A program made the position numbers and the translations under genes. A DNA stretch of 64,000 nucleotides, from the NCBI RefSeq assembly GCF_030684315.1, contig NC_081369.1:2904689-2968688 (forward strand). The letters run 5' to 3'. The notes below the pieces were generated by a model that saw nothing but the letters and a program-made list of their open reading frames with translations, did not search any database and was not told where the DNA came from. Position 1 is the stretch's first letter, and the number at the start of each line of letters is the position of its first letter. This DNA is from Stegostoma tigrinum. Taxonomy: Eukaryota. This document shows positions 23,473-62,634 of this stretch, piece after piece.

Positions 23473-23527
23473 ATGTCTGCATTTGTTGTACTGTGGTACA
23501 TATCAGCGTCAGGCATTATTTACACAA
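23473..23527 (+). pseudogene. Leader (signal peptide) exon, VJ-C1 IgSF gene copy A
   Basis: ATG at 23473, MSAFVVLWYISASGIIYT, phase-1 donor A|gtacgt; same 55-nt length and GII.T end as copy B leader. Confidence 0.8.
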
Positions 23528-23734
23528 GTACGTATGTATTTATGTAGATACATTTATATACCTGCCTGGTAAATAGAAACAGGAACCGGAACGATGTCGA
23601 GGTAACCTCAGTTCATTGCTTATTGTCGCCTTCCATGATTTTATGTTCCGTACGTATTATTTGCTCCTTCTTTAAAAAAATCTTGCCAGTTGTTATTTCT
23701 GCCAATAATCTCCATTTCGCTTCATTTCTGACAG

Positions 23735-24055
23735 CTACTGATGTGAACGCCCTGTCAGTGCATCAGGCCCCCGACCGTATGACTGCGCTGAAAGGGGCTA
23801 ATGCATCCGTGAATTGCTCAGCGATACTTTTCCTTCCAGCGTAAAGGTAGATCTCTCTTGGTGGAGAAATGGGCCAGGGCACAGCTTTGACTCCGTCTAA
23901 AGACAAAAGGAAAGTAATAATGTGGCACAATCATGGCACTTCCGACCCCTATCACATGAATGTGACAATGCAAGATTCAGGCATCTATTACTGCAGCGTT
24001 GAGGAAAGGACAGGAAAGATTTCCAATGGCAGTGGGACTGAGCTTACTGTTCACG
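23735..24055 (+). pseudogene. Single-exon germline-joined VJ-type Ig V domain, copy A (two compensating frameshifts)
   Basis: Acceptor ttcatttctgacag|; SVHQAP...NCS; VKVDLSWWRN in a shifted frame (TAA 23842 in the main frame); QDSGIYYCSVEERTGKISNGSGTELTVH; donor G|gtgagt; 321 nt like copy B. Confidence 0.9.
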
Positions 24056-24124
24056 GTGAGTGACACTACGGAAAGAATGGGCTCACTTAAATTAGGTATG
24101 CAAATTTCAGCTACTAAAACCTTA

Positions 24125-24915
24125 GAGTCATAGACTTGCACAGCATAGAAACAGGCCCTTCGGTCCAACTTGTCTGTACCAACCAGATATCCTAAGTTAA
24201 CCTAGTCACTTTTGACAGCATTTGGTCCATATCCCTCTAAACTCTTCTTCTTCATAAACCCATCCAGATGCTTTTTAAACGTTGTGATGTACCAGCCTCC
24301 ATTTCTTCCTCTGGCAGTTCATTCCATATACGCGCCACCTTCTGTTTGAAAAAGTTGCCCCTTAGGTCTCTTTTAAATCATTCTCCTCTCACATTAAACC
24401 GACGCCCTCTAGTTTTGGACTTCCCTAGCCTGCGAAAAAAAAATGCCCTGGCTATTTACTGTATCCGTGCCCCACATGATTTTGTACAATCTCTATAATG
24501 TTGCCCCTGCGCCTCCGGCGCTCCAGGGAACATAGCCCAAGCCTATTCAGCCTCTTCCAATCGCTCAAACCCTGCAACCAGGAAACATCCTTGTGAATCT
24601 TTTCTGCACCCTTTCAAATTTCACAACATTCTTCCTATAGCAGGGAGACCAGAACTGCACGCAGTATTCCCCAAGTGCCCTAACCAGTGTCCTGTGCAGC
24701 GGCAACATGACCTCCCAACTCCTATGCCCAATGCACTCACCAATAAAGGCAAGCATACCAAATGTCTTCTTCACTGTCCTATCTACCTGGGACTCCACCT
24801 TCAAGGAGCTATGAACCTGCGCACCAAGATGTCTTTGTTCAGCAACACACCCAAGGACTTTACCATTAAGCACATAAGTCCTGCACTGATTTGCCTTTCC
24901 AACATGCAGCACCTC
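24125..24915 (-). mobile_element. CR1 LINE 3' fragment in the V-C1 intron
   Basis: Minus ORF HLGAQVHSSLKVESQVDR...EYCVQFWSPCYRK. Confidence 0.9.
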
Positions 24916-25444
24916 ATATTCGGCTGAGATTTACTGATAAAATGTTTTCTTCCGGCTCTGCTTTGTGTGCTTACTTTCACAAAACTGACAGCGTCTCTCG
25001 TCGACGCAGAGCCGATCTGTTTACCGCACCATATCCAAACGCTAGACATTAATTAAATGTTAACAGCGAAAATAGACGTTTCTGGCAAAGCTCAGACCTG
25101 CTGAGCTTTTCTAGCAACTTCGGTTTTTGTTCCTGATTTAAAGCATCTGCAGTTCTTTCGGTTTTAATTAATTCATCTTTATTTTTCTCTATGAGCTATC
25201 GCAATGTTATATATGCCTACTTTTTATCATGAATTATCTGTCATCCGCGTCATTGACGCTGTCGGCATTATGTGCTTATCCCTTTTTTTGCTGAAGAAGA
25301 CATTTGCTCCGTCTCCCGCGCCCCCTCCCCATCCCATCCGCCTTTCCTTGGATTGAGGGTATAGAACGTGCGAACACCAAGCGTTCACGTTTGAATTTCT
25401 AGAGTTCTGATCTTGTGGGAATGACTGGGCGCTGGGACATATCC

Positions 25445-25641
25445 GAGATAGTAGTAGAAACTGGCAATGCTGGAGATTCTAAGAAAACAAGGTGTAGAGC
25501 TGGACGAACACAGCAGACCAGGTAGCATCAGCGGAGCAGGAAAGCTGACGTTTCGGGTCTGGACCCTTCTTCAGAAACAAAAAGCTTTCCTGCTTCTCTG
25601 ATGCTGCCTGTTCTGCTGCGTTCATCCAGCTCTACACCTTT
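25445..25641. repeat. Inverted pair of Penelope-derived short repeats
   Basis: aaggtgtagagctggacgaacacagcag...gcaggaaagct mirrors agctttcctgc...ctgctgcgttcatccagctctacacctt. Confidence 0.8.
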
Positions 25642-27784
25642 TCATATGAGATATTCCCGAGTCAGGATAATGCCCGGTTTTAAACGATGAGGCTGCTGCA
25701 TTTCAATGCTGCCGGATTTCACTTCTGATGCATGAAACATATTGTCTACTGGGTGTAGGTTTTGTAAACTATATTGCCTGAAACTGCGTGCAAATAAAGT
25801 GAAGGGAGTGGCTGTACAAGGTAGTGTTGGGCGATAGTATTTTTCTTCTCTTTGCAAACATATTAGGAGTTGCGCCAGCGTTTCTTATCTAGAAAACTGG
25901 AGAGTCTTCTCTCAGATTCCTGGCTTGTCGGTGACCGGGAGAGTCCTACTACAAAACAGCTTGATCACTCGCTGTGGAATATCCAGCATCTGGTGCGCTG
26001 GACTGAACCTCGGCACTTGTATAGTCATTGATGTCCCAGAGTTGCAAATAGACAGTTTGCCGTAGCTGCCTTGGCAGTATTTTTTAAACATTTGGATAAT
26101 TGGGATAAAAGAAAATACACATTTATTTCCTGAATAGAAGTCATTTGGCCGCCGCTTCATTCGAGCGATGAACTTGAGCTGCTCACTCAGAAAATGAATA
26201 CCATGTTTCCCAATATCTCGCCGAATCAAACCAATGACATTGTTACTAACTTACAGAAAATGAAAATAAAAAGAGAAATTGATAACTCCGGAGATAAGGA
26301 AGTGATGATTGGAATGAACACTAGACAATACATTGCAGCATTATTAATATCACGAAAGGATCCGTGTATTTACTGATAACGGATGTTATTGATGCTTACA
26401 GAAGTTAATGATAATCCATTTGCTTCCATAATCTGTGGTGCTTGTACAATGTGATTTTGCACTTGTAATCATAAATTTGGGATTTGCAGATACTAATGTT
26501 AACGGGAGCATTGGTTTTACAATTGATGGATTTATATACGGCGGTGGGTGTGTTTCCCGTTTTCACATTTATTTAGACATACTGCAAAGGTCGATCTTAT
26601 ATCGGGAAGATTTGTTTTTCAAACACAAGCTGCTGAGACCTTTCAATCTGACAGACCCGGTCTCAGACTGTGGAAACGATGGGCTGGTTATCCAGTGTTT
26701 CAATTCAGCCTGAGACTTTCGCGGTTGTCGAGATGCAGCCTTTATCCAACCGATAAAAGCCGGAGCCAGGGATAAAACGGATGGTATGCAAGATGGTGGA
26801 GCAGGGCCATGAGGAGAAGGCAAGAGAACGTAGTCAGCCCAGGGACCGTGAGGATAACATGTTCATTGGGACGTGGTGAATCTAATACTTTAATGAGTCA
26901 ATGGCTAACTGACAGACGGAGGGACCGCCGGAGCAAGGGCGGACCCATTGGAATGATCTTGGGAAATAAATTACATATTGAAATCATAAATAATATATTC
27001 TTGATATAACAGCCAGTAGTGATCTTGTAGTTTTGGCAAAAGAGTATTAGAGGTGAACAGCTCTTATTTGAATTGATAGTGAGGATACGAAAATTCGGAA
27101 GTGGAGTAGTCACGGATCAGGGAAGTAAAATAAAATTTATATTCACTCGCCTGTAGGATGAGTCTTGTCATTCCGTGAATGTGTTGGAGAAGCCTGAGAA
27201 ACATAGTTGCGAGCATCTTTAAAGAATATAAATTGCAGAGTTCATTGGTGAATTAGTTTCAAAGTTTGTGGAAAAATTATCAAAACAAAAATTAATTGAG
27301 ATTTAAATTTGTTTCAATACAGAAATGATCTCCCGGACGTCAAAGTTAGTTCAAGGCAATAGCGAATGGATCATTGCATTTTCTGTTTCAAATTAATCAA
27401 GGTGATTATGACAATGCCATATTGTACACATACTATTATTCTTCGTTTATTTAAAAAGATTCTTTCATTTTCATTTAGTAGGGAGTGCAGATATTAATGC
27501 TAATTGGAGATTCGATAACGAATATATCTCAATATATAGTTAAGCGATTTATTCAAGGAGGAGAGTGGTTTCCGTTTTAAGATGTACAGATGAACTGCAG
27601 AGATCTAAAGCGCTGTGAGTTTTTTTAACATTAGATGCGGACTCACTTCAGTCTAAAACTATTGTGTTGCACATTGTGAAAACTGTGCAGAATGTTCTAT
27701 TTAATATTTCTCGTTAGAGACCCCTGTAATTAATCAAGTTGGATTCTATCTGTTCCTTCTGTAACACGAATAATGTTTGGCTCT

Positions 27785-27907
27785 GAGGTAGTAGGAACTG
27801 TAGATGCTGGAGAATCCGAGATAACAAGGTGGAGAGCTGGATGAACACAGCAAACCAAGCAGCATCTTAGGAGCAGGAAATCTGACGCTGTGGGCCTAGA
27901 CTCTTCA
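27785..27907 (-). repeat. Penelope-derived short repeat
   Basis: ggaactgtagatgctggagaatccgagataacaagg...gggcctagactcttca. Confidence 0.75.
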
Positions 27908-28054
27908 ATTAGAATATTTGACTCTAGCTGTTATTGGATAAAAATACAACATAATGAATATGGAGCCTATTAAAATATTTAACTCCTCAGATAGCCATTC
28001 TTCTTTTTCTCTAACAGAATGAATAATGACTTATTTCCATTATCTAATTCACAG

Positions 28055-28336
28055 TGCCACCCACTCCGGTGCCGATTACTCCGCAATTCTCTCCAACCCT
28101 CGCATTTCTCTGAAAAACAATTGGCTTCTTCCCTGAATACTTTATCCTCACTTGGTATAAAAATGGCAGTGATATTACATCTGGAATAAACACTACGACA
28201 AAACTAAATTGATAGCGACTATTTGAAGTTTCCAGCACCCTGAACCCTTTGGAAAGTTGGTTAACTTACACCTGCCAGGTTTCTCATGTGTCATTTGAAG
28301 CCCCAGCCAGAGATAATTGCACAGTTCTGCATCAAG
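28055..28336 (+). pseudogene. Ig C1-set domain exon, copy A, inactivated
   Basis: Phase-1 acceptor ttcacag|tg; VPPTPVPITPQFSPTLAFL*KTIGFFPEYFILTWYKNGSDITSGINTTTKLN**RLFEVSSTLNPLESWLTYTCQVSHVSFEAPARDNCTVLHQ. First Cys codon is TGA (28111); stops at 28210 and 28213. Donor is either mutated at 28337 or G|gtatga at 28390. Confidence 0.88.
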
Positions 28337-28964
28337 GATGCCAAGAATCCCAAATTTTCAACAAGCCATTGAACTGTACCATGCACAATGGTATGACATG
28401 TCTTATTTTTCATCTTCTGTAACATGCAAGTGAAATGCCTTAGCACATGTATATGAAATACGTAACAGTGCTCATTGCTTTGCCAAAAATTCTTTGACGA
28501 ACTCTGCACAAAAGTTTTGAATATTCCGAGAAATGGTAATCATAATCAGATTGACACGTCACTCCTTTTTTTCTTCTTTAAGAAAACGATCCGCATTTCT
28601 GGCAGGAAGTTTCGATCATGTTTCTTGCAGAAATGTGGAGTCTACGTTCAATCTGACCACATAATTGAGGATAGTTGTGCGAAGACAAATCATACACCCT
28701 TTACATGGCAGTTGTTGTTCAATTCTGTTATTTAAATACATAAGCCTCCTCTTGAAATAGGCAGCTTCAACTGGCAATTCGTATCATTGTAAGAAACATG
28801 AGTTCTTGGCAATTGACACAGCATGTTACTTACTAGTTGCATTATTGCTCAACCGCTCTCAATGATTCTCTCTGAATTCCTTGGTCCTGTTAGGAGAAAA
28901 ATTATTGCATAGCATGAGTTAACTGGTAATCCCTCATACATCTCAAAATGGAATTGAAATAGGA

Positions 28965-29160
28965 TATAGAACAGTACGTCACAGTACATGCTTTTCGACC
29001 CACGATGCTGTGTCGACCTATTATCCTACTAAGATCAAACTACCATACATGCCCTACATTTTACTATCCTCCATGTGCTTATCCAAGAGTGCCTTAAAAG
29101 TCTGTAAAGTTCCTGACTCCACTATCGCTGCCGGTAGCACAAGCCCACCACTCTCTGTGT
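28965..29160 (-). mobile_element. CR1 LINE 3' tip
   Basis: atatagaacagtacgtcacagtaca...cccacgatgctgtgtcga matches the 3' end at 42190-42250. Confidence 0.7.
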
Positions 29161-29360
29161 AAATGAGGTAGAGAGTTTCAGTTAATTGAGTAAGCAAAAA
29201 CTGTTAAATAATCTAAAATTCGTTTTAAATTTATCCTTATTCTATCAGGCTATGAAGAAATTAAACTGCAATAACATGCTCAGGCTGATACACTGACAGA
29301 AATTTTGTGAAATGCGACTTTGCTGAGCAAATACTGACTCTGACGACTTGTCTGGAATAG

Positions 29361-29534
29361 TTCCACACTGAGGAAAACACTCAAAGCCAGAACAATACGG
29401 TTTACACAGGAATGGAAATGATGCAGAGGCTTCACCGAGGAGGAAAGGTTGCACCTGAGATGACAGGGAGTGAGATCGGGGTAGCAGGCAACCTGCCATT
29501 TTCGGAAAGTGCGAAAAACGACGTGTTTGCCTGA
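29361..29534 (+). pseudogene. Candidate terminal cytoplasmic exon of copy A with Tyr motif
   Basis: After aatag|: FHTEENTQSQNNTVYTGMEMMQRLHRGGKVAPEMTGSEIGVAGNLPFSESAKNDVFA*; AATAAA at 29641. Acceptor is weak and no TM exon was confidently found. Confidence 0.4.
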
Positions 29535-29825
29535 ACCAGATAACGCCCGACTCACGTTGTACAAATATTTGATGAATCCTCGTTAATGTAGAGAACTACC
29601 CCGGAATTTTCCCTGGATTAAGAACTCCCAACATTCGCTCAATAAACAACCATTCACTTGCGCCTCACGTCTCTTGAAAATTTTTCAGAAAATAAGCTGC
29701 GTCAACAGTCCTCATTTCAGTCCTATGATATTTGGCCGTCCCTGCATCCACTCAGGATTGAGCGCACCCGTAAAAGCTAAGTTTCAGTGCAGCAATTGAT
29801 GTATATGTTACTTGCGGATCGGCCG

Positions 29826-30020
29826 CACTGAGAGGTTGAATTGAGGCCCTGGCTGCCCTCTCAGATAGACGCAACGTATCTTGTGGCACGAGTTTGAAGA
29901 AGAACAGGAAATTACGTTGGTGACCTGGTCAATATTAATTCCTCATTCAAGGTCACCGAAACATATACCTGATCACTATCGAATTACAGTTTGCGGCAGT
30001 TTACACTGTGCAAATTGGCA
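29826..30020 (+). mobile_element. Deu-domain SINE (SacSINE1/AmnSINE1-like core), interrupted by CR1
   Basis: gaggccctggctgccctctcagatagacg...gaagaagaacagg...cctggtcaatatt...tgtgcaaattggc; 3' tail resumes at ~30405-30485. Confidence 0.75.
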
Positions 30021-30039
30021 AGCAATTACCAAGATTACT

Positions 30040-30398
30040 GTTACCTGATCGAGGTGTACAAGGGAATGAGAGGCATGGATAGAGTCGATAGCCAGAGACT
30101 TTTCCACAGGGCAGGATTGACTGCCACGAGGGGTCATAGTTTTAAGGTTTTAGGGGGAAGGTATAGAGGAGACATCAGAAGGAGGTTCTTCACCCAGAGA
30201 GTTGTGAGCGCATGGAATACTTTGCCAGTGGTAGTCGTGGAAGCAGAGTCATTAGTGACATTTAAGCGACATGGACATGGGCAGCAGTGAATTGAGGAGA
30301 ATGTAGGTTAGGTTATTTTATTCTGGATTAGGATTATTCCACGGCACAACATCGTGGGCCGAAGGGCCTGTACTGTGCTGTACTTTTCTATGTTCTAT
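30040..30398 (+). mobile_element. CR1 LINE 3' fragment
   Basis: LIEVYKGMRGMDRVDSQRLF...FFTQRVVSAWN; tail ctgtacttttctatgttcta. Confidence 0.9.
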
Positions 30399-30489
30399 TA
30401 CGGAATGAACTGGCTGTAAAGGCCTTTGTTTGAGAAATTTTGTGGACCGGATAAAGCGCTGTATGAATAAAAGTACATTTTTCTTTCTG

Positions 30490-31010
30490 TTTTTTTCTTA
30501 TATGGGGCCACTTCGCATTTGACGTTCACAGGTGAGAGATTAATGGGATTCCTGTGAAGGCTTGATAGATATGTGATAAAGACGCGATCAGTAGGGATTA
30601 TATTCAGTGGAATTCGGGATAATAAAGGGGAATGTTCTCGAAACCCGTAAAATTCTAACAGGAGTAGACAGGAAGAAAGTTCCTGATGAACAAGGAGTCT
30701 GCAACCAGAAGTCACAGTTCAAGGCTGTAGTATTATACTTTTAGAATTTAGAGGAGGAGAAATCCCATCACTCAGCACATGATAAACCAATGGAATTTTT
30801 TTTCCAGATGAAGTACTTCAGACTAAAACATTAAATGTTTTCAAAAAGAAGTTAGACATAGTTCTCAGGGCTCGATTAATCAAACAGGATAAGTAGGGGA
30901 TGTGGGAACATTACACTGAATTGGATGATCTGCCGTGATCACTTGGAATTGCAGAGTAGTCTTGAAGGACCGAATAGCCTACTCTTACTCCTAGTTTCTA
31001 CTTTTCCATA
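30490..31010 (+). mobile_element. Decayed CR1 LINE 3' fragment
   Basis: gttcacaggtgagagattaatggga...ttgaaggaccgaatagcctactcttactcctagtttct. Confidence 0.7.
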
Positions 31011-32584
31011 ACTGTTATGTATAATATCATTCCCTCTATGCCGTACCACACATTGGATTAGTGATCATGGCGTAGGTCACTTTCTTTCCGTCTCTTGGAT
31101 ATTTTATACTGAAACAAATGGAACACGCACAAGATAACTGAAGAGACATTCTGCGTCATTTTAATTATCTGAGAAAGAATCAAAATAGTTTGACGTGTTA
31201 TACCCGGTTTAACGGGAAATATATAAGCAATACCAGTCTTTACTAGGTGCACTTCCTTCCATAACACAATATACAATGGAGAATGCCTGCTGTATTAAAC
31301 ATTACTTAACGAACATGTGAGTTATTTTAACACCACGGTTCAACATCTACTTTCAAAAAAACAATCTGCAAAAGAAGGCAAAATCCAGCAGTGAAAATGA
31401 AACATTAGAACTTGGTCTTAAGATTATTAGCCTCGGTTACAAAGAGTGGAAAACCACATGCGCAAGAATAGATTGGTTGAAATGACTGGATATAATAAGC
31501 ACGTTGTTAGGACAAAGGATTATTAAAATATGCAAGATTGCCACTGCGCTAGGCTTCTCCATAATGCATTAGGAGACAATGCTTGACTGATGTTAAAATA
31601 TATGTAAATGCACAAATAACATTCACAACTCTTGCAAAAAGCAATACGATAATTATTTTGGCCAATTTTTCAACGAATTAACGATCTTCCCTTCTGAGCT
31701 AAGAAATTAATACTGTGTGCCATACTGCCTGATTGCTTCAGTTGTATGAACGGTAAGAATTTAGAGCTCATGAAAAATTGTATCGATACTCGCTCCAAAA
31801 ATTTAATACCAAATGCAACTAGTCTAAAACTGATCAGACCTGTGTTCAGGGGGCCAATCTGTAGCTGCTGTCCGTACAGCAAAGTGACTGCAAAGCGTTA
31901 TGGAGCGCGATTCCAGATAATAGACGCGCAGAGCAGCTGATGTGCTGTTGACATCGAAACAGTGTCTGCGCACCCTTTCTTTTCCTGTCCAGCACCAATC
32001 AATTTGATTTTGACGCTTATGAATGAACCCGAACTGATGTGAACCAAAATTGCTGATGAAAATCTGAAATAAAAACAAAATTAAAGTGCGCTAGCTCTAA
32101 CAAACTGATGAAATTTCGTATGCCCCTCGATCTGAATCTGCCTCTCTTTGTCTGAGTCTTCCTCTTCAGGCGTTGACCACTCTTAAAATTCATTTTTTGT
32201 CAATCGCTTCCGAACTACTTTTGTGTCTTTATTTCTTTCTCTCAGCCTGTCTGTTCTCCTTGGTCTGTCTTTCTGTTGCCTTCTCCCCCTGCCTCCCTCT
32301 CTCTCTTTCACAGTTGACAATGCACGATCACATAATTACCACATGACATGTCAGTTGCACGTCATTGCTGATATTTGGAATAATTCCATAAGAAGATCAC
32401 AAGCTTTTTCGATATGTTTGTTCATCTTCCCCTGCATTGTCATAATGATTTGTGACCTGCTGGGATTATCAATTTCTTCACATTTTCATAAACAACGGCA
32501 GCTTCAGGTGTAAACTATGAATTTGTTATTCATAAATTCATTTCCAACTTGAGTTGGAATGTACATTCATAGACAATTGAGGCC

Positions 32585-38134: not shown

Positions 38135-39130
38135 TCTAGCCTCATTTGCAGCTCGACGACACAGGTTGTGGTGACTGTGGTTTCGGCTTGAAACCAGTGC
38201 AGGTTGAATAATTTTTCCCTTGTTCTGTGAGTCAGCTTCACACCTGCGCGGAGATTTCTAGCAATGAACTACGCTGAGATTACAGCAAGGTAGATCAAGA
38301 GCAGTATTAGGGCGATGATGCAGCCATGGTTGACACTGGTCCAAAAAAGGAATGGGTCAGTGGAGGAGCCATTTTTCACGACCACGATTTCCACTTCTTT
38401 GTGGAGCAGGCAAATGATTGTGGCGAACTTCATGTTGCAACCAAACTGAGGAAGCACCCTCTGATGAAGGGTCTAGGCCCGAAACGTCAGCTTTTGTGCT
38501 CCTGAGATGCTGTGTTCATGCTGGATGTTCATGTTCATGATGGATGTGTTCATCCAGCTCCACACTGTTATCTATGAAAAAGCACACTCCGCGATACACC
38601 CCCAGTGACGATGTAAAAAAAGCCTTTGTAAGGTCAAAGAAGACTACATCCAAGGGTATCATTCCTGCAATTGTCATGCAGTGAAACCATGTCCGTTGTG
38701 CCCTTCTGCCACCAAAAGTCACAATTCCCGGACGAGATGTTCAGCCATGGAGGGGAGACAGTTGAGGACAACTTTGGTGATGACGTTCTAAATGTTGACG
38801 GCAGGGAGATTCCCCTTTTGTTACAATGGTCAGGCTTATTCCCTTTTTTTGAAATTCCCGTAACTTCAGCATCTTAGAGCACTCCCGAGAACACCGTCCC
38901 CCTCCCACTTCCAGATAAAGCAGACAAGGGTGTGGAGCTGCACCAGGTCTGAAATGCCTTCCATTTCAATTCCGCAGCGGGAATGCTATTTGCTCCAGCA
39001 GCCTTGTTGTTCCTCGACTGATGGACTGGCGTCTCTACTTTGTTGTAGGACTCAGGTACTACTGTAGCACGCTGAGGGATGCGTTCAAGAATGTTGGGAT
39101 AGTCGGCAGACCCCTGGGTGAGGTATGGTG
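38135..39130 (-). mobile_element. RTE-clade LINE, inverted 5' segment (linker and RT up to the YADD region)
   Basis: Minus: NNKAAGANSIPAAELK; FFDLTKAF; QFGCNMKFATIICLLH...NGSSTDP...VNHGCIIALILLLIYLA; KLFNLHWFQAETTVTTTCVVELQ. Confidence 0.85.
38460..38572 (+). repeat. Penelope-derived short repeat with hammerhead-like core, inserted in the RTE
   Basis: ctgatgaagggtctaggcccgaaacgtcagcttttgtgctcctgagatgctg. Confidence 0.8.
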
Positions 39131-39134
39131 GAGT

Positions 39135-39932
39135 TATCCCCCGCTCTTCAAAGTTCACAAGAACGCCTTGGAAAACGTTGACGACGTCTAATACCTCGGG
39201 AGTATTCTGTTGACTAAAGCAGTTATTGATGAATAGATTCAGTACTGCTTCCATCATGCAAGCGCAGTCTTCAATTCTCTGAGGTAAAGAATGCTCAAGG
39301 GCAACATCAGATCCTACAATAGCGTAATAGCTTACAGAGCTGTGGTTACTTCTGCCCTCCTATATGGCTCTAAGTCACAAAATGTCTACAGCAGAAAGCT
39401 TACTACGCTGAATCAGTGCCACCAACACTACCTGTGAAAGGTTCTGTGAATCCATTGGGAAGAAAGACGCATTAACACCAGCGTCTTCAACCAGGACACA
39501 TTGCCTGAATCGAGGCATCAATCACCCTTGATTGGCTACAATAGGCTGGGCATGCCATCCGTATGACTCACCAAGCTGGTGCTCTACTCCCAATTTTGAA
39601 ATGGCAGGCATGCTCCAGGTGGACAGCAGAAGCACCTCAGGGATACATTCAAGCCCTCACTGGTGAAGTAAAGCATTCCCAAAAGGCCGTCAAAAGGGGA
39701 GGGGATCACCTGCAAAGGCACTAAACACCTCGAGATCTGTCGTTGGGAAAAACACTAATGCCAAGTGAAAACAAAGGAACGTGATGCCATATCAATGCTC
39801 CATTACACATTTCCATGACCAAGTGTAATGGAACCTGTGCAAGGCACATTGATCTGTCCAGCCAATCTACGGGCTTACAGAGAATGGAAGAGTATCATCA
39901 TCATTTGGGATGGACCACCAATGATGATGATG
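39135..39932 (+). mobile_element. RTE-clade LINE, forward 3' segment
   Basis: LENVDDV*YLGS...AVIDE...YRAVVTSALLYGS...IHWEERRINTSV...WAGH-like...PGGQQKHLRD; ends in an (ATG)n tail at 39921-39932. Confidence 0.85.
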
Positions 39933-41930: not shown

Positions 41931-42187
41931 AATCCTTTTCACCCCATGTTCTTCTATATTCTTGAAACCAGAAATCAAACATTAATTGTTTGTTTCCAGG
42001 TGAAAACATTTTAGATTCTTTTAACTTTGACGTACATGACATGAACTTTCTCCCCTGTAAACTGACCCACTACATCTGCAGTTCTTACCATCTGTCGACA
42101 AATCATTTTCTTTCACATCACAAAGTTTTCCAAAGTTCCAATGGCAAACAGTTGGCCAGCAAGCTTCTTTTAGTACTTTTTCTATTT

Positions 42188-43547
42188 ATAGAACATAGAA
42201 CATAGAACAGTACAGCACAGAACAGGCCCTTCAGCCCACGATGTTGTGCCGACCATTGATCCTCATGCATGCACCCTCAAATTTCTGTGACCATATGCAT
42301 GTCCAGCAGTCTCTTAAATGACCCCAGTGACCTTGCTTCCACAACTGCTGCTGGCAACGCATTCCATGCTCTCACAACTCTCTGTGTAAAGAACCCGCCT
42401 GTGACATCCCCTCTATACTTTCCTCCAACCAGCTCAAAACTATGACCCCTCGTGTTAGCCATTTCTGCCCTGGGAAATAGTCTCTGGCTATCAACTCTAT
42501 CTATGCCTCTCATTATCTTGTATACCTCAATTAGGTCCCCTGTCCTCCTCCTTTTCTCCAATGAAAAAAGTCCGAGCTCAGTCAACCTCTCTTCATAAGA
42601 TAAGCCCTCCAGCCCAGGCAGCATCCTGGTAAACCTCCTCTGAACCCTCTCCAAAGCATCCACATCTTTCCTTTAATAGGGTGACCAAAACTGGACGCAG
42701 TATTCCAAGTGCGGTCTAACCAAAGTTTTCTAGAGCTGCAACAAGATCTCATGACTCTTAAACTCAATCTCCCTGTTAATGAAAGCCAAAACACCATATG
42801 CTTTCTTAACAACCCTGTCCACTTGGGTGGCCCATTTTAAAGGATCTATGTATCTGCACACCAAGATCCCTCTGTTCCTCCACACTGCCAAGAATCCTAT
42901 ACTTAATCCTGTACTCAGCTTTCAAATTCGACCTTCCAAAATGCATCACCTCGCATTTATCCAGGTTGAACTCCATCTGCCACCTCTCAACCCATCTCTG
43001 CATCCTGTCAATGTCCCACTGCAGCCTACAACAGCCCTCTATACTGTCAACGACACCTCCAGACTTTGTGTCGTCTGCAAACTTGCTGACCCATCCTTCA
43101 ATCCTCTCATCCAAGTCACTAATAAAAATTACAAACAGTAGAGGCCCAAGGACAGAGCCCTGTGGAACACCACTCACCACTGACTTCCAGGCAGAATATT
43201 TTCCTTCTACTACCACTCGCTGCCTTCTGTTAGCCAGCCAATTCTGTATCCAGGCAGCTAAGTTCCCCTGTATCCCATTCCTCCTGACCTTCTGAATGAA
43301 CCTACCATGGGGAACCTTATCAAATGCCTTACTGAAGTCCATATACACCACATCCACAGCTCGGCCCTCATCAACTTTTCTAGTCACATCCTCAAAGAAC
43401 TCGATAAGGTTTGTGAGGCATGACCTGCCCCTCACAAAGCCGTGTTGACTGCATTTGATCAAGCCATGCTCTTCCAGATGGTCATAAATCCTTCAGAATC
43501 CTTTCTAACACCTTGCAGACGACAGATGTGAGACTTACTGGTCTGTA
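42188..43547 (-). mobile_element. Relatively young 5'-truncated CR1 LINE (RT domain plus 3' UTR)
   Basis: Overlapping minus ORFs: SQHGFVRGRSCLTNLIEFF...YMDFSKAFDKVPH...GVPQGSVLGPLLF...FADDTK; ERVQRRFTRMLPG; (ctatgtt)n tail. Confidence 0.95.
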
Positions 43548-44104
43548 AAAATTTATATTCAAATAAAGCAATTATATCTCATTCTCCGTTATATTGAAGT
43601 AACTGGACAGTGTATATGTATTTTATTATCTTCCAAAACTTTTGATTTTCAAGCAATTGCTCAAATTAGATATTTTAGAATTCTAACTCGTGTAAATCTC
43701 GAAATATTCAATTCATTTTTGTCACCAGGTTTAATTGTTTTGAAACATCTGGTGATCAACATTTAGTTTGTTTTCACAAAATTTTTCATCTTTGCGAGCA
43801 GCTAGACTAGAATAGTCTAAGATAGTTGACTTTGTTTTCGAAAACGGCAACAAATTTCAGCCCTATGGTTGTACTGTGATATTGAAAGTTTGCAGACAGT
43901 CCTGTACGTTCTTGACGGTAACTGAAAACGTTCTGTAATTCTAGCTATTTAAAACAAAAAGAACTCTGACAGTTCGAGAATTTAAATTTAATATTGCTTA
44001 ATATATGACTCAACACTGCAGAACTAGAAAACAGATAGATTATAAACCAGTGCAGATGCAGAACAAGTGTGTGCGGAGAGACTAAAACAGAGAAGCTCTA
44101 TTCT

Positions 44105-44540: not shown

Positions 44541-44759
44541 CCCAGGCACTCACTTTCTTCTGGTGATTTATCAAGCACCTTCCTCAGTTTGTGTCCATCC
44601 GTGCTCGAATGCAATCAACATGTTTTTACGTGTACTTGTTATATTTGCCCACGAACAATTGCCTACATGTAACTAACAGATTATCGTGGGCAGCATTAGC
44701 AGTGATAAATCATGTAAATCTTGAAAAGACAGAAAATAGATGATTGACAACCAGACAGA

Positions 44760-45330: not shown

Positions 45331-45639
45331 AGATTAGGGAGGTGGTGAAACCTTTTGAGTTATGAAATCCCCTCAAAATATGTCAAGGACATAGCCTAGA
45401 CCTAAATATTTTATGTCATTTAAAGACAAGTGACAGGTGTTGTATTTCAGATGTGATTAGATATGTCCACGAGTAAAGCGTATCAGACTTTAGTTTTAAC
45501 AACACAATCAAAATACAAACAAACAAAAAAAGGTTTGGCCTAACTTTAGTTCTACTGGAAAAACTTCATGAAATAATGTATTATTTAATTGCTAATCATC
45601 AACTGTTCCAATGTACCAGCATCCCATAAGCACAATAAA

Positions 45640-45895
45640 AACCCACAGCACTGTGGATGCTGTAAATCAGAAATAAAATAAAACAAATTGCTGGAACAAC
45701 TCTGCAGATCTAGCAGCATCTGTAGAGAGAAATCAGAGTTAGCATTCTCGAAACAAAAACAGAGAGAGAACTATAGACGCTGTAGCGGATGCAGTCCCAA
45801 GGAAGAATCGCTTGACCCAAAATATTAATTCTGATTTCTCTCTATAGATGCTGCCAGAACGGATGACCTTTCCAAACAATTTCTGTTTTTGGTCC
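45640..45895. repeat. Inverted-repeat MITE-like element
   Basis: aattgctggaacaactctgcagatctagcagcatctgtagagagaaatcagagttag mirrors ttaattctgatttctctctatagatgctgccaga...caatttctgttttt. Confidence 0.7.
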
Positions 45896-48061: not shown

Positions 48062-48150
48062 TTCTGATGAAGGGCCTAGGCCCGAAACGTCAGCTTCTGT
48101 GCTCCTAAGATGCTGCTTGGCCTGCTGTATTCATCCAGCTCCACACTTTA
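48062..48150 (+). repeat. Penelope-derived short repeat with hammerhead-like core
   Basis: ctgatgaagggcctaggcccgaaacgtcagcttctgtgctcctaagatgctgcttggcctgctg. Confidence 0.8.
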
Positions 48151-49579
48151 TTACCAGCATATTTAAATCTAAAGCCAGTGAAGGATGAATATAATGGTGC
48201 TCTAGTGAATCCAATCCCACTCGCTCTATTAACCAATATGTCTGACGCTGAAGTACTGAGTTCTGGCTTATGTATTAACTCAAATATCGATATGAATTTG
48301 TTAATTTCAGACGTTAAACAATATGGCAACAGAAGGCGTCTGGCGGAGTAACTCAGGAAAATTTACTCGATGAATAAATTAAAATAAGTAAAACATGAAA
48401 GCGACTATTTGGCTTATACTTCGTGTTTCAGCTGCGAGCGATATTAACACTTGATCTCCGGCCTCGCTATAGAACACGTCGAGGGTCTTCTGGTTCTGAA
48501 AGGACAGAAGGACAATTTTAATATTAAACTCCATCGTGTCTCATCTTTGAAAGGTGCCGCTTCCTGACGCAATTTCTAAGCTCCGACACATTCAAACATT
48601 GCATTCTGATTGGTCGAGGTGAGACATGGTGTATTTCTAGACTAACAGGAGGCGTGTTCATCCTGTAACTGGCTCGTAAGAGCGATGGGCATTGACTGAT
48701 GTTACTGTATCTTAACTAGTTCCTCACGTTATCAGTTCTGCATGGGCTCATCAACTTCCGTTGTTATGACTTTTCCTCACTTTTCCTCAGACAACAATGT
48801 CGTTTATCATTTAAAATGACATCAGTGCGGAAAATAGCTATGACCAGAATTGGTTAATAAACGGCTAAGAATCTGGGAGGATACCCACATTGCCTTATTC
48901 AACTTCCATGTTCACATGGTCTCATAATCATGAAATTGGAATGAACTAATCAGAGACACCATTTCGCCTCGTCGCCGCGACTATAAAACATTGATGGGTT
49001 GTCTTCATTCTGTTCACAGCTCCATTTTATTTATTTGAGTGAAAGAGTCGGGTCACACTAAAGTATTAATGCCAAGACTGATTAAGCAAATTTACAATGC
49101 ATTATATTAACCAGTGATCATGGCTTCATTACCTGATTGTGAATAAACAACATTAATTGTTGAATATTAATTTCACTACCAATTTTATAAGCCCGTCCCC
49201 ACCGCTCTCCCATCCCTCGAGAGGTAAACTTCGATTGCTCATAGAATAATGAACTGTTCTATCTTGCAGCGGTTCTAACAATTTTAAAATTTCATTTTTT
49301 TCACTCTTAATTTGCTCACTGGATTGTCCCATTTGAATAATCAAGTTTCGTTCAAAACAGAGGCTGGCCTCCTTAATGAGTTCTCAATCCTGACTGCGCT
49401 CAAATGACTTGCGTGCCTTCTCGAAAAGTCAGTACCACCTGTAGGTAAAGGTAACCCATTGACGCATTTCTATGCTGTTACCTTATAGTAACAGATTTAT
49501 GTCATTGCCCAATCAATCGGGCAATAGCACATGTTACCATGCTAGCTCCTGTATGAGTCATAGAAAAGGTTTAAAGTTG

Positions 49580-50630
49580 AATAGACGAATTAGTAAAGTT
49601 AGATCGCATGGGATTCAGCGTGAACTTGCCAATTGGATGCAAAATTGGCTTAAAGGCAGGAGACAGAGAGTGACGGTGGAGAACGGGTTTTCGGACTGGA
49701 GGCCTGTGGCAAGGCGTTCCATAGGGTTTGGTGCTGGGTCCACTTTCGTATGTCATTTATATAAGTGATTTAGACAATAATATAGAAAGTATAGCAGTTA
49801 TGTTAGTGGATGATACCAAGGCTGGTACTATCATGGATCATGACAAAGGATAGCTAAGATTACAAAGAGATCTTGATCAATTGGATCAATGAGCTGAAGA
49901 GAGACGGGTGGAGTTTAATTTGGATAAAAGCAACGTATTGCATTTTGGTACAACAAACAGATCTAAGACTTGTACAACTAAAAGTTGGGCCATGATTAGT
50001 ATAGTAAATCAGAGAGACCGAGGGATTCATGCAGATAATTCTTTGAAGTTTACACCACCATATAGATAGGATGGTTGAGAGCATTTTGCATGCTTGCATT
50101 CATTGTTCATACATTTGAGTACAGGAGTTGGGACGTTGTGCTGACGTTGCACAGAACGTTGGCGAAGCCAGTACTATGCCCAGATGTCCTTGTCAAGGGA
50201 AAGATATTATTAAGCTGGAAAGTGCTCAGAAAAAAATCACCAGGATTTTTCTGGGAGTGCATAGTTTGAGCTATAAGGAGAGGATGGATAGCCTGGTGCC
50301 TTTTTCACTGGAGCGGAAGAGTTTGTGAGTTTACCGTATAGGGTCTATAAAGTAATGAGGGATATAGATAACGTGAATTGGAGGAGTCTTTTCCCAAGGC
50401 TGGGAGCTTTCATTACTAGAAGCCATATTTTTGAGTGAGATGAGAAGGATTTAGAAAGACCATAAGGGTTTGTTCTTTTTTTAACATAGAGAGTCGTTCG
50501 TGAGTATAATGAACTTCCAGAGGAAGCGGTGGATGCAAATACAGGTACAGCATTTAGAAGGTAGTTTGGCATGCATTGGTTGGGCTGAAGGATCCGGTTG
50601 CATGGTGTATGGTGTTGTGATTCAATGACA
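49580..50630 (+). mobile_element. CR1 LINE RT/3' fragment
   Basis: KVRSHGIQRELANWMQNWLKGRRQRVTVENGFSDWRPV; MLAFIVHTFEYRSWDVVL. Confidence 0.9.
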
Positions 50631-50644
50631 CTGTTACAAAAAAT

Positions 50645-51282
50645 CATAGAGCCATGGAGTCTTAGGGCAGAGGAGCAGATCCTTTGGTCCAACTTATCCA
50701 TGACAAGCAGAAAAACCAGTCTGACTTTGTCCCGTTTGATTCATGTCTCTCTCAACCATTCTTAGCCATTTACTCATCCAGATGTCTTTCGAATTTTGCA
50801 AACGTACCCGTCAGCAACACTTTCTCTGGCAGCTCATTCCATGCACACGTCACTGTCTTTATGGAAAAAGGTACCACTGAGGTCCTATTCAACTTTTTCC
50901 TTTCACCCTATACCAATGTCTGCTAACGTTGGGCTCCCACTCGCTTGGAAAACTACTTTGGCCATTCACCCTGTCCATCTACATTTGATTTCTTAAAACT
51001 CTGTGAGGTCACCTCTCCAACTCCAATGCTCCACAGAAAAGCAAAACCCTGCCTATTCAGCCTTTCCCGATACCTCAAACCTTCCAGACACAGGAACATC
51101 CTTGTAAATCTTTTCTGCACCCTCTCCCATGTAACAACATCCTTCCTTTAGGAGGGCAACCAGTGTTGTATGCTGTATTCTAAAAGTAGCCTCGCCAATA
51201 TCCTGTACAGCAGCAACATGACCTCCCAACTCCTATACTTAATGTTCTGAACAATATGTGTAAGCGTGTCAAAAGCTTCTTC
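50645..51282 (-). mobile_element. CR1 LINE 3' fragment, tail-to-tail with the previous one
   Basis: Minus ORF YRSWEVMLLLYRILARLLLEYSIQHWLP. Confidence 0.85.
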
Positions 51283-51861
51283 AAAGCCACAGTCTCGTAA
51301 TATCATTAACACAGAAATCAAACCTATTCGTTCGTTTTCAGGCAATAACATCTAGTTTCTTTTCACTTTGACATAGGTGACATGATCTATCTCTTCTTGC
51401 ACATTAATTATTTTGATTTTGATTTTTGATTTTTGATTTTATTGTCGCCTGCATTTTCCAGTAATATTATAACAAAATATCGTGAAAAGCTTTCATTGGT
51501 CACCATGTGATGACGTAATTGAAATGATTTAAGAATAAGAGGGAAAAGAACAAAGATATCGCTCGGCCAGAGGTTATCAGTCCCGAGTCATCCCATCGCC
51601 ATCAGCGACACCTGAGCTGCCATCGCTCTTTTAGCGCTTGGCTAGCATCGACCATTTTTTGCTGCTGGGCCGTTATTCGTCTGCCACCAACTCGCCACTG
51701 CCTGCCAACCCACCAAAGTCAGAGTCGCCTCTCTCACTGCGAGGCTCATCTCATCGATGCTGCCTCATTTGCTATGCGTTATTTCTCTTGCAGAGAGCTG
51801 TTGCCAGATTGTCTGTTTCAGAAGCCGTGGCTAAACATCTTTAAGCTCCGTAAGTGATGGC

Positions 51862-52050
51862 AAGAACTGCAGATGCTGGGATCAGAGACAACACAGTATG
51901 GAGCTGGAGGAACACAACAGACCAGACAGCTATATGGGAGCAGGAAAGTTGACATTTTGGTTCGGGACCCTTCTTCAGGAAAGATCCCGACCAGAAAATT
52001 CAACTTTCCTGCTCCTCTGATACTGCCTTGCCTGCTGTGTTCCTCCAGAT
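51862..52050. repeat. Inverted pair of Penelope-derived short repeats
   Basis: ctggaggaacacaacagacc...gagcaggaaagttga mirrors tcaactttcctgctc...gctgtgttcctccag. Confidence 0.8.
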
Positions 52051-53649
52051 CTGTACGGGATTGTCCTAACTTCCTTGAGTGTAGCTTTTTATTGCTAATT
52101 AGATGAAAGAATCAGGCTCACACAGAATACAAAATGTTCTGTTTTCAGCTGGGGTTTGGAGATAGCGGTTGGAATAGATAGATACAACTCTCTTTGCCCT
52201 GCAGCCAAAGCTTGAGTTCTCTCTCGGCTGCGAGATCGTTTCTTCCGGTTTTCTTTTTTCCCTTGTCCAGAAGGGAAATTGCACACGAAGGGGGTTGTTT
52301 TACTATATGGCAGCAGTTTATAACTAGTTGTTAAATACGACGTTATTTCATGCAACATTTCAATGGACTTAAGGTGATGGTATGCCCTTTTCTTTTGCTT
52401 TTGAACTGCGTTGGAAAAATCAAATGTGTTTTGCTTAAAGTGTACTGTTGGACAAATCGAATAACACTCGGAATTTCAGCGCCTTACACTTGCCTTTAAA
52501 TAACATGCAGTATAATGATCTCCACTACCGTCTTAGTATATTTTGACGGGGATTCGCCTAGTCCATTACACTTACGATTTTAGCACATCCCCACTCACAC
52601 CACCCATTAGCCCCTCACCACTACTCCCCCACATCTTCAATGCCATTTTGTTTCCTTTGTGTCAATCGTTCCAAATACGTACTTCTGTGCCACCAAGCCT
52701 ATTGCTGTGGACTTCTTCTTTCTTAATTACCCCACTGAAACACACTAAACTTGACCACATACAGTGAATAATTCTTTTCATTAACTCTGGACCCGCAGAG
52801 TGGCCTTTGATCCATTTACTCGCATTGTAAAAATTCAACGGTAGAGGCAAATGCTGGCAAGTGCAAAATTCCGCTGCTGTTGAGAACCGGGCACTCTTCA
52901 GCGTGCTCAATTGTAAACTCTTAGTTCTAAATATGGACTTGTTAAATTTGGCGCGGTTCTAGAGCCACATCACACAACTTAGGGTTTTCTTAAAATGTGA
53001 AGGTTGACCTTGGCTCTATAAGATTTTTTTGTGCCCGTCACTCATAAATATACTATTTTGGGTAGGCGCACCCACACCTGAATGATTCGTTCGAGCGAGG
53101 CAAATTACATTTTCGGCACTCCCTGGTCCTATTGCCTCTTTACACGGGAACAGTAAGGAATATAAGTTATATACTCTAGGGTTTCAGTCTCTCAGGTCAG
53201 TTTAGGTACTACCAACATTGTTTTGATGCTGGACATCGTGGTTTCTGGGCCATTTCTGCTTCCATTGCTTCCTTTACGTTGTTATCAATGGAAGAGTACA
53301 GGTTAACGGATTGAGGGTGCGTGTTTGATTGTAGTCAGACAGAATATCATTTTGCTCAATGTTTAACCAGCATTAATACATTTGCTAAGCTCTAAAATCA
53401 ATGCTAAAGGTTTCCACGTCAACTATATCTTAAATGTGTATCGTTGTGGCACCAATTCCAGTTGACCTGTTGAAGCGGTTGAACGGGAGAGAGTGAAGGA
53501 TGTTCGTGTGAATTGGCTTCCAAATGACAGTTCGCTAAATATGGTCATGCCACGCTATTGTTGCATTAATTTGCGTTACTAAATGGTGCACATATAAAAC
53601 CAAATTGTTTCCATGCGTTCACACGACGATTTTAAACATGATGCAGAGC

Positions 53650-55700
53650 TGTGATTGGATCTAAAACGGAGACTGCAATGAAATTTGCTGTTAAGATTCT
53701 GACAGATTGGTTTTTCAATTGTCTCTTCCTCATTACAACATTCGACTAACTTTACCCTTTATGTTTGCTGTCAAGGTGACCTTATTATTTCCCTCGTGAC
53801 ACTCCTCATACAATATTTTGATGATTTATTACCTCTATCTTCATGAATTTTACCGAATCTTCATGACCTTTAAAAGGCTTTTTTTGTTCCCCTCACATTT
53901 TTCAATGATCTATGCATCTAAGAACAAAACACTTTTCAAAGATTCCTGTTCTTACATTCTCACTGTTTAGTAAAATTTGAAGCTAGGAGTAAGGATAGGA
54001 CATTCGGCAGTTTGAGCTTGTTTGGCCATTCCGGGTGCTTTCAATGCCACGGTCCTCAGGCTGCTTTCAATGCCACGGTCCTTTGATACCTTAATTTCTT
54101 TCTTGAATTCAATCAGTGACTGGCCTCCTCATCTTCTAAGAAAATCCAGATCAGTTAAGCATGATTCCTTTTCATAAACCCACGATGACTTTGTCGAATA
54201 CCCTTAATAATATATAAGAATTCTGTTAACATATCTTTTGTCATAGACTATCGCATTTTTCCCACAACTGACGTCGGTTAAATTGTTTTTAATTCTCTGT
54301 GTTTTTCTTTATCTCACTCTTTTTTGTTTAAATAGAGGGGTTGCATTTGCCACAGTGTAATCTGTAGGAACAGATACAGAGTCTGCAGAATTTTGTGAGG
54401 TGGATACCAATACATCTAATATTTCCAGGCTACTGTTTTTAATATTCACGGCTGCAGGTTACTAGAATCCAGAGATTTGATACCCTTTAAGCCCATCACT
54501 TTCTCCAACTAGTTTTTAGAGGTGATGCTGGCCTCTTCTAAAACAAATCCCCTCTCTGACTCTTGTTTCCTTTAATTTCTGGAAAATTATTGATATCCTC
54601 ACCTGAAGAATGAGCAAAACATCTTTTCATTTCTTACGTCCGGCCTCCTTTCTCTGCTGTAATTTCCCTGGCATCTGATTGTAAGCAGTGGACATTTGCC
54701 ATCACTGCCTATTTCTCTTCATATTCTGAGAGAATATTTTGTAAGCAGTTTTTGTATTTGTTGCATATTTAGTCTCATACTCTAACTTCCTCCTCTTGTT
54801 AGATATCTTCTGTCCTCTTTTGTTGAGTTCTAAACTGTTTCCATTTCTCAGGCTTGCTGCTTTATCTAAAAAAAAAGTCTCCTGTTTGGATCGAATAACA
54901 TCCGTCATATTCTTAGTAAACCATAGTTGAGAAACATATCCTGTTTTATTTTCGTGCCAGAAAGAAATTAATTTCTTCAATCATGCATGTTGTTCATCTT
55001 ATACTTTGCCTATCCGCTGCTGACTTTCAGTACAGCATCCAAACCATCATTGCCAACTCGTGCTGAATATGTTTATTTCGATTCAGGACCTTAGTTTGAG
55101 GTTTAACGTCTTCACTCTAGGTTAGTAAACAAATCCATCACTTTTATGGTCGCTCTTCCCCCATGGACCGAACACAACCATGTTGCTAATTAATCCTTTC
55201 TCAAAACAAAACACCAATTCTAGGACATCCTACTGTCTTGCTGCTTCCACAAAATTTTGGTTTAAAAATCCATCATGGATGCAATCTAAGAAATCCTCCT
55301 GCATATTACAATTGATACTTTGGCTTGTCCAACCTATATAAAGATTAAAACACCCATGATTACAGTTGTACCTTTCTTAAAAACATCTCGAATTTCTGTC
55401 TGTTCCCTTATATCTCTACAGCAGATTGGGTATCGAATGAGAACGCTCACCAAAGTTTCCTGGTCTTGATAGTTTTATCTCCACTTATACAGATTTCACA
55501 TTATCTTTTTTTCTAAGCCAGTTTCCTTCCTCTTTATTGCATTGGTTTTGTCTACCATTCCCTAATAATGTTGCTCACTTTGTTTCAGTTTTTGCCAGTC
55601 CCTTTTAAGTGTTGAATACACCTGCATGTTCAGTTCCGATCTGCAGCCTGCAGCCACGTCATTGCAACTATAGTAAAACGATATATACCTATCTTTAATA
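53650..55700 (-). mobile_element. Old decayed CR1 LINE
   Basis: gttaagcatgattccttttcataaacccacgatgact (SQHGF, reversed) at 54153; endonuclease-like remnants to ~55680. Confidence 0.6.
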
Positions 55701-55934
55701 GTAATTTTAATCTCTTATTTCAACTATTGCACTATTGTGGCACAATGCCTTCGGCTTGTTATTTTTGTTACTTTCATTGTAAATACACGTAAAAGCATGT
55801 TGCATGTATTTGAACATGGACGCACCCTAACTGGAAAACATGCTTTACAAACCACCAGAAGAAAGCAGCCACACAAAAGTACAGAGGACGAATGTAATCA
55901 ATACATAGATCAATCACATAAACGCGCTCGCCCT

Positions 55935-56385
55935 GAGTTGGTGTGGTTCGATCTCGACAACAAAAGATGTGCTAACAAATAGCACAATAATTGCACAATC
56001 CTTTAGCAGAATGGCTCGAACGGTTTGACACCGGAAAGAGACGAGACCGACTGCACTACAACTGCACGGATGAATTTGTAACCAACTGTTCAAAAGTAAT
56101 TATTAAAGGTTAGACATAAGCCGAAATAGTCATGCATTGCAGGAATGTTTCACCTTGTCTTGAAAAGTTAACAGACGTACCTGCTCTCAAATTTCCATTG
56201 AGTGTCTTCAACTCGAAAGTAACGTTGAAATTAGGACAATGAAGGTGCGCCTTCCGCTATTGCTTGGTGAGTCGTAATTCAGCACGCCCACTTCCCGGCT
56301 ACTGTGAAATCTTGCCATCATCTCACCCTTAATTGTCTCTAGTTAACTTGCAGCATCAGTGACGGGCTCCAGTGGCTTAGCGAGA
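55935..56385 (+). promoter_or_regulatory. Putative promoter/5' region of gene copy B, homologous to 23030-23472
   Basis: Shared blocks ttggtg...tctcga, gaatggctcgaa, ctgcacgga, ccgaaa, aacgttgaaat, cttcc. Confidence 0.55.
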
Positions 56386-56440
56386 ATGCCTGAAATCGCT
56401 TTTCTCGGGTACCTGTCAACTCTCGGTATTATTTGTACAG
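56386..56440 (+). CDS. Leader (signal peptide) exon, VJ-type IgSF gene copy B
   Basis: MPEIAFLGYLSTLGIICT, phase-1 donor G|gtatgt; homologous to 23473-23527. Confidence 0.82.
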
Positions 56441-56589
56441 GTATGTATTCACTTGTCTACTGGGTAGAAAAGAATGAATAAGAAATGGTCAACATTGTTT
56501 TTGATTATTTCCTATTGTCCTTAATGCGTGATATTAAAAAAGAAACCATATTATCCAAACAGTCACCATCTTTTTTTTTATCTCGACAG

Positions 56590-56910
56590 CTGCGAATGGG
56601 ACGGTTGTCTCGGTGAGTCAGGACCCCGCTCGTACGACCCAGCTGAAAGGCTCAAATGTAACCATTAACTGCTCTGTGTCGTTTTTCGTTCCCAACGTAT
56701 TGGTGGATGTTTATTGGTGGCGCAATCGCAAACTTTTAACCCCGGATCCAACATCAAACAAAAAGAATTTAACGAAGCTTTTCAAACAGAGAACTTCCCA
56801 GTTGCATCTGTTCAATGTGAGTTTCCAAGATTCTGGATTCTATTACTGTGGTTTTAAACAAGGGATCGGAAGGTTTTCTAATGGCAGCGGAACTGAGCTC
56901 GTTGTATATG
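56590..56910 (+). CDS. Intact single-exon germline-joined VJ-type Ig V domain, copy B (NKp30/SIRP/VJC1-like non-rearranging receptor)
   Basis: Acceptor ttttttatctcgacag|; AANGTVVSVSQDPARTTQLKGSNVTINCSVSFFVPNVLVDVYWWRNRKLLTPDPTSNKKNLTKLFKQRTSQLHLFNVSFQDSGFYYCGFKQGIGRFSNGSGTELVVY; donor G|gtgagt; B-strand Cys, C-strand Trp, DSGxYYC, GxGT. Confidence 0.92.
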
Positions 56911-62630: not shown

Positions 62631-62634
62631 TATT

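Follow-up and report, generated by a model that had tools for sequence, protein, structure and literature searches.

An intact leader-VJ exon pair and a pseudogene in Stegostoma tigrinum, probably from a cartilaginous-fish receptor family resembling SIRPs

Non-rearranging VJ-C1 genes are favoured models for the target of the RAG transposon in the origin of antibodies and T-cell receptors (TCRs). Two lineages of this kind, UrIg and UrIg2, have been described in sharks, and UrIg is said, in a 2023 J Immunol paper, to be a secreted multi-C-domain protein. Both are elasmobranch genes with a split leader, a one-exon VJ and C1-type domains, 9–11 C domains in UrIg2, and both have been mis-annotated automatically as immunoglobulin (Ig) light chains (PMC12227049). 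The SIRPs form the second point of comparison. The SIRP-alpha tail carries DITYADLNL and, 24 residues on, HTEYASIQT (PMC5589908), and its motifs ITYADL, LTYADL and TEYASI are conserved across mammals (PMC5413580). Phosphorylation of the SIRP-alpha tyrosines leads to recruitment of SHP-1 and SHP-2, SIRP-beta binds DAP12 through a basic residue in its membrane anchor, and SIRPs occur in splice forms with the first domain (D1) only (PMC12975943). According to a recent survey, the SIRP family dates from the tetrapods (PMC13262535); a review holds that its origin is unknown (PMC9652883). Here we describe two receptor gene copies, A and B, in a 64,000-nt stretch of Stegostoma tigrinum DNA (RefSeq assembly GCF_030684315.1, contig NC_081369.1, forward-strand positions 2,904,689–2,968,688). 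This whole stretch is called the window, and all positions are given in its coordinates.

We consider it highly likely that copies A and B are two ancient paralogues from a multigene family of non-rearranging type I membrane receptors of cartilaginous fish, copy A being a pseudogene and copy B having an intact leader and VJ exon. Because copy A is a pseudogene and copy B shows only its leader and V exons, the window is without an intact gene: it holds two members of the family and no working tandem cluster. An initial annotation of this DNA had proposed a multigene receptor cluster; the multigene part stands, as a family spread through the cartilaginous fish, and the working cluster does not. 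The window's own contribution is thus small, an instance of birth-and-death turnover with one pseudogene and one member whose first two exons are visible.

The two gene copies

The exons recognised in the two copies are the following.

23473–23527, + strand: copy A leader exon, 55 nt, MSAFVVLWYISASGIIYT plus 1 nt; phase-1 donor GTACGT
23735–24055, + strand: copy A VJ exon, 321 nt, disrupted; donor GTGAGT; Pfam V-set match on the 3' piece
28055–28337, + strand: copy A C1-set exon, disrupted; GFFP...LTWYKNG...YTCQVSH; 3' end uncertain
56386–56440, + strand: copy B leader exon, 55 nt, MPEIAFLGYLSTLGIICT plus 1 nt; donor GTATGT
56590–56910, + strand: copy B VJ exon, 321 nt, open throughout; donor GTGAGT; Pfam V-set match over 1–108/109

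The start codons lie at 23473 and 56386, both on the + strand, so that the spacing of 32,913 bp and the exon lengths given in the initial annotation are exact. The leader-V intron measures 207 nt in copy A and 149 nt in copy B, and each V exon sits between an AG acceptor behind a pyrimidine tract and a GTGAGT donor. Exon phases are 1/1 in both copies, as is usual for Ig-domain exons. Each 321-nt exon encodes the end of the signal peptide, the V framework (C…W…DSGxYYC) and then, uninterrupted, a J-like NGSGTEL(T/V)V strand. A split leader and a one-exon VJ with a GxGT J-like motif after YYC are therefore common to both copies, broken by stops in copy A. The contiguous VJ exon had also been annotated as free of recombination signal sequences (RSSs), and a motif scan upheld this in both copies: neither the heptamer (CACAGTG/CACTGTG) nor a nonamer occurs in or near either V exon, and not one heptamer-spacer-nonamer arrangement was found across the whole window.

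Database searches were run exon by exon, and leader and V were joined locally for the frame check and for comparison with the window. For local BLAST and for the tree described below, the reading of copy A had X placed at its breaks. A profile of the family recognised both V exons (hmmsearch E 1.8e-38 for V_B and 8e-18 for V_A) as well as two pieces of the copy A C1 exon (3.5e-15 and 7e-11); the copy A leader matches profile positions 1–20 weakly. Homology between the copies is confined to the V exon and ~39 bp of intron, with 66% nucleotide and 37% amino acid identity.

In otherwise diverged flanks, ~150–170 bp 5' of the two ATGs (23300–23350 and 56200–56250), we noticed a common block, CTC.A..G.AACGTTGAAAT.A.GAC.A, followed by CTTCC.CT.TT and CCCA.TTCC with ETS-like TTCC cores. 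The block could represent a promoter element conserved within the family.

In copy B, the leader and V exon are open (106 V codons), and the ATG, donor, acceptor and second donor are all intact. V_B carries every family-invariant residue (Q10, P12, C27, W42, C86 and G100) and the J-like motif SNGSGTELVVY, and it matches protein model P0002 of Scyliorhinus canicula at E 1.9e-24 (phmmer). The AlphaFold2 model of V_B (predicted local distance difference test score, pLDDT, 80.5) shows a V fold of the generic antigen-receptor type: the structures that Foldseek ranks highest, TCR V-beta, VNAR, CD79b and NKp30, do not discriminate among receptors, nor does a PDB search with V_B alone. In the 7.1 kb that follow V_B, neither tblastn with twelve relatives nor a six-frame profile search detected an exon for C1, membrane anchor or tail. 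Either the remaining exons of copy B lie past the window end, behind an intron of >7.1 kb swollen by insertions of long interspersed nuclear elements (LINEs), or leader and V form an orphan exon pair.

Copy A is a pseudogene, its V and C1 exons bearing five stops or frame breaks, and because it retains its introns it is an unprocessed one. Its V exon contains two in-frame stops, TAA at 23842–23844 and TAG at 23848–23850. The family-like residues SVKVDLSWWRNGPG are encoded in another frame and require a 1-nt loss near 23838 and a 1-nt gain near 23880; the exon is still 321 nt long because the two slips cancel. The C1 exon begins 4.0 kb downstream of the V exon. In it, TGA at 28111–28113 takes the place of the first Ig cysteine (…TLAFL-stop-KTIGFFP…), and TGA TAG at 28210–28215 brings the exon to three stops altogether. 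There is no GT where the exon ends in relatives, the next one following at ~28392. With its linker (VPPTPVPI…GFFP…YTCQVSH), the copy A C1 shares 56% identity with the C1 of relative P0003. Same-species contigs from two samples, one of which may be the assembly's own source, cover 23400–24169 and 27858–28400 at ordinary genomic depth with 0 differences and 0 gaps, and the breaks are therefore real DNA rather than assembly slips. Neither tblastn nor the profile search detected a membrane or tail exon of copy A anywhere in the window, such exons being either lost or unrecognisable. The downstream C1-set exon of the initial annotation is thus present from 28055 but carries three stops; copy A is not a readable V-C1 gene, with a V exon that is not open and a C1 that loses its first cysteine.

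With this neighbour certainly dead, copy B could be dead too, an orphan leader-V pair with no working C1, anchor or tail at the decayed edge of a receptor cluster. We regard this as a serious possibility, albeit one that falls short of being probable. No family exon occurs in the 7.1 kb behind V_B, whereas the copy A C1 lies only 4 kb past its V; the interval after V_B is packed with LINE and reverse-transcriptase fragments; and no RNA run was found that contains the locus. However, V_B is open over 106 codons and keeps all invariant residues and splice signals, which is unexpected after long neutral decay at the 66% DNA identity that separates the copies. Moreover, shark introns often exceed 7 kb, and C1-skipping isoforms are known in some relatives (P0004 and P0010).

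A receptor family of cartilaginous fish

When V_B was compared with 1.84 billion representative proteins by phmmer (HMMER), 272 matches fell at E ≤0.001, and the best full-length ones are to the N-terminal V domain of shark and ray proteins of 260–450 aa. A search with a single member retrieved 40 proteins and a 20-sequence profile retrieved 47, all from cartilaginous fish (47 of 47 in the case of the profile) except one mussel noise match. The family includes sharks of six orders, rays, skates and the chimaera Callorhinchus; no bony-vertebrate member came within reach of the word-seeded single-member and profile searches. Several members per species share one chromosome-sized contig, and it is from these shared contigs and from nearby RefSeq accession numbers only that we infer clustering of the family.

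In a maximum-likelihood tree of 64 V domains, a sample without bona fide Ig light-chain, TCR or SIRP outgroups, V_A and V_B fall inside a 22-row elasmobranch clade with support 97/98. V_A pairs with Chiloscyllium P0166 (98/84) and V_B with S. canicula P0002 (90/60). Because the two copies group with genes of different shark orders, their sequences suggest that the A/B duplication is older than the split of those orders, the V_B node being the weakly supported one. No relative that we retrieved exceeds ~50% V identity, which implies that the V domains evolve fast.

The intact relatives, as represented by protein models, have a split leader, a one-exon VJ, a VPPTP linker, one C1-set domain, a membrane anchor and a tail. 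Pfam recognises a V-set and a C1-set domain in them, the latter at 50–54 bits, and P0004 and P0010 are isoforms without C1. In the long tails, four tyrosines hardly vary (alignment A1); their motifs are xSYAxLNF, TVYAQT or TEYAQI, LTYAxLDL and xEYAxI. Their spacing of 23, 13/14 and 23 amounts to a doubled two-tyrosine module. In other relatives (P0164, P0183, P0133, P0032, P0024 and P0009), the tail is short (9–41 residues) and a basic residue, arginine or lysine, stands where the anchor begins. Two C1 domains, nearly identical to each other, occur only in the skate model P0093 (Amblyraja). A protein search with the tail of a ray member alone returned batoid relatives only, and an Atlas search with the tail gave nothing usable (unnamed clusters, scores 0.81 and 0.75).

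Several RefSeq models have the look of fusions by read-through between neighbouring family genes, or of recent duplications within them: P0174 (Callorhinchus), P0158 (Hemiscyllium), P0002 (S. canicula) and the Amblyraja model P0093. The forms seen in them are V-C1-V-part C1, a doubled anchor and tail, and two near-identical C1 domains. Such models are consistent with tight tandem arrays.

Automatically named models of the family are found in RefSeq for 15 species or more. The commonest name is 'tyrosine-protein phosphatase non-receptor type substrate 1-like', that is, SIRP-alpha; others are 'tapasin-related protein-like', 'NCR3 ligand 1-like', 'immunoglobulin lambda-1 light chain-like' and 'uncharacterized'. 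We rejected the names that refer to tapasin-related protein, B7H6/NCR3LG1, CD276 and major histocompatibility complex class I as automatic labels taken from the C1 domain. Squamate proteins with immunoreceptor tyrosine-based inhibitory motifs (ITIMs), P0067, P0029 and P0089, were also rejected as relatives, being V-V-V and not VJ-C1. A literature search turned up nothing on VJ-C1 genes of cartilaginous fish that are SIRP-like or carry ITIMs. The family had been called possibly uncharacterised, and no paper describing it was found; as gene models, its members are already known from many species.

Comparison with SIRPs and with other V-C1 receptors

The family resembles SIRPs in several respects. 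A non-rearranging VJ-type V is followed by C1-set sequence, a membrane anchor and a tail. Long-tailed relatives have four tail tyrosines in two paired modules; judged by the published motifs of SIRP-alpha, the motif types are the same and the spacing is similar. In human SIRP-alpha the fourth motif is SEYASV and the spacings are 24, 17 and 26. C1-skipping forms in the family parallel the D1-only splice forms of SIRPs, and the short-tailed members with a basic anchor residue resemble SIRP-beta. Among PDB sequences, the best match of P0003 is the SIRP-alpha ectodomain 2wng (5.2e-14). The single C1 with its VPPTP linker scores 42.8 bits against the third domain (D3) of SIRP-alpha, compared with 21.6–28.9 bits for other extra C domains. 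There are also differences, in that tetrapod SIRPs have two C1 domains and the family usually one, and V identity to SIRP-alpha is low.

Because the tail pattern and the basic anchor residues of the relatives match SIRP-alpha and SIRP-beta, we infer by analogy that the family comprises paired inhibitory and activating receptors that would work as these do. In such a scheme, the VJ domain of a long-tailed receptor would bind a cell-surface or pathogen ligand and Src-type kinases would phosphorylate the tail tyrosines. The phosphorylated tail would then recruit phosphatases of the SHP-1/SHP-2 type and damp the cell. The basic anchor residue suggests that short-tailed members are activating partners, which would probably pair with a DAP12-like adaptor. 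The mechanism is proposed for the family on the strength of its intact relatives; copies A and B show no tail.

Several observations weigh against this account of the family and the two copies, the single C1 among them. When the V-C1 pair of known receptors is scored with the family profile, lambda chain (62.1 bits), SIRP-alpha (61.7), kappa chain (60.3) and UrIg2 (59.0) tie, and SIRP does not stand out by ectodomain similarity. For the V_B model, the first Foldseek matches are TCR V-beta, VNAR, CD79b and NKp30. Tyrosine motifs of this short length could have arisen by convergence, and the spacing comparison sets motifs rather than full tails side by side. Neither copy has a membrane or tail exon within the window by tblastn or profile search, and the signalling part is therefore read from relatives at ≤50% V identity. 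That no RNA run was found to contain the locus also counts against the account. Because of the one C1 as against two in SIRPs and the tied ectodomain scores, we do not file the family as SIRP proper. Rather, on the sequences of its members, it is best described as SIRP-like.

That the cartilaginous-fish family is a true co-orthologue of tetrapod SIRPs we regard as possible rather than probable. Were it so, the ancestor of jawed vertebrates would have had a SIRP-alpha-type inhibitory receptor with a doubled two-tyrosine tail, together with activating partners. The original form of SIRP would then be VJ plus one C1, which is the layout proposed for the pre-RAG ancestor of antigen receptors. The fast evolution of the V domain (≤50% identity between shark orders) would in that case indicate an arms race in which the ligand is polymorphic or comes from a pathogen. 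With its single C1 and its SIRP-alpha-like tail, such a family in cartilaginous fish would shift SIRP-type paired receptors to the base of the jawed vertebrates, and beside UrIg and UrIg2 it would be a third non-rearranging VJ-C1 lineage in sharks.

UrIg and UrIg2 share with the two copies the general plan of split leader, one-exon VJ and C1-type domains (PMC12227049), so that A and B might be paralogues of these genes, and UrIg2 V-C1-C2-C3 (9dmx) is indeed the second-best whole-chain PDB match of the family profile (1.1e-33). This score is inflated by the extra C domains, however, and for the V-C1 pair alone UrIg2 does no better, at 59.0 bits, than lambda chain or SIRP-alpha. Against the 9–11 C domains of UrIg2 (PMC12227049) stands a single C1 here, together with a tail that bears tyrosine motifs; UrIg and UrIg2 have no ITIM-type tail and occur as one copy, whereas the tails of the family resemble those of SIRPs and its members are numerous in each genome. 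The UrIg2 paper makes no mention of SIRP-like or ITIM-bearing relatives (PMC12227049). A paralogy to UrIg or UrIg2 is thus very improbable, and with a single C1 in the relatives, where several and up to 11 C domains would come after the VJ in those genes, the family, as judged by domain composition, is not UrIg or UrIg2.

For NKp30 (NCR3) and CD79b, the likeness is a one-exon VJ-type V, and both are top structural matches of the V_B model at the fold level only. Neither has a C1 or four ITIM-type tyrosines: signalling depends on a charged anchor residue in NKp30 and on an immunoreceptor tyrosine-based activation motif in CD79b. We rejected NKp30 as the identity of the copies, since it lacks the C1 that comes after V in copy A and the relatives. 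The label 'NK-type' (natural killer), which the initial annotation had attached to the receptors, likewise found no support. Its description of the V-C1 architecture as light-chain-like proved apt, the ectodomain being by family-profile scores as light-chain-like as it is SIRP-like.

Germline-joined (RAG-joined) Ig light-chain or TCR genes are the weakest alternative, which we can practically set aside because the window has no RSS remnant and the relatives have anchors and tails. Sharks do possess germline-joined Ig genes, several family members are named 'immunoglobulin lambda-1 light chain-like' in RefSeq, and the V-C1 order is that of a light chain, with lambda tying for the top V-C1 score. 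But light chains rearrange or are RAG-joined and lack anchor and tail, whereas the lambda-named P0025, P0170 and P0175 bear membrane anchors and tyrosine-motif tails, every full-length relative is V-C1-anchor, and V_A and V_B nest in the family clade (97/98).

Surrounding DNA

The space between and after the receptor copies is largely debris of LINEs and reverse transcriptases together with other repeats, and no other gene was found in the window. The reverse-transcriptase fragments are listed here.

42195–43548, − strand: LINE reverse-transcriptase fragment, one of the two longest copies
61266–62633, + strand: LINE reverse-transcriptase fragment, the other of the two longest; the two are mutually 70% identical
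1271–1609, 12423–12764 and 24568–24930: other LINE reverse-transcriptase fragments

Pfam RVT_1 matches 42809–43492 at E 9e-24. Three stretches of the copy A V-C1 intron (25070–25236, 25404–25737 and 27742–27908) reach a summed contig depth 10^4–10^5 times the unique level in three shark species, and are very high-copy interspersed repeats. The longest open stretch outside the reverse-transcriptase fragments, 38877–39359 on the − strand (161 aa), has no Pfam match, coincides with the most GC-rich 2-kb bin (0.467), and is probably a repeat-derived open reading frame.

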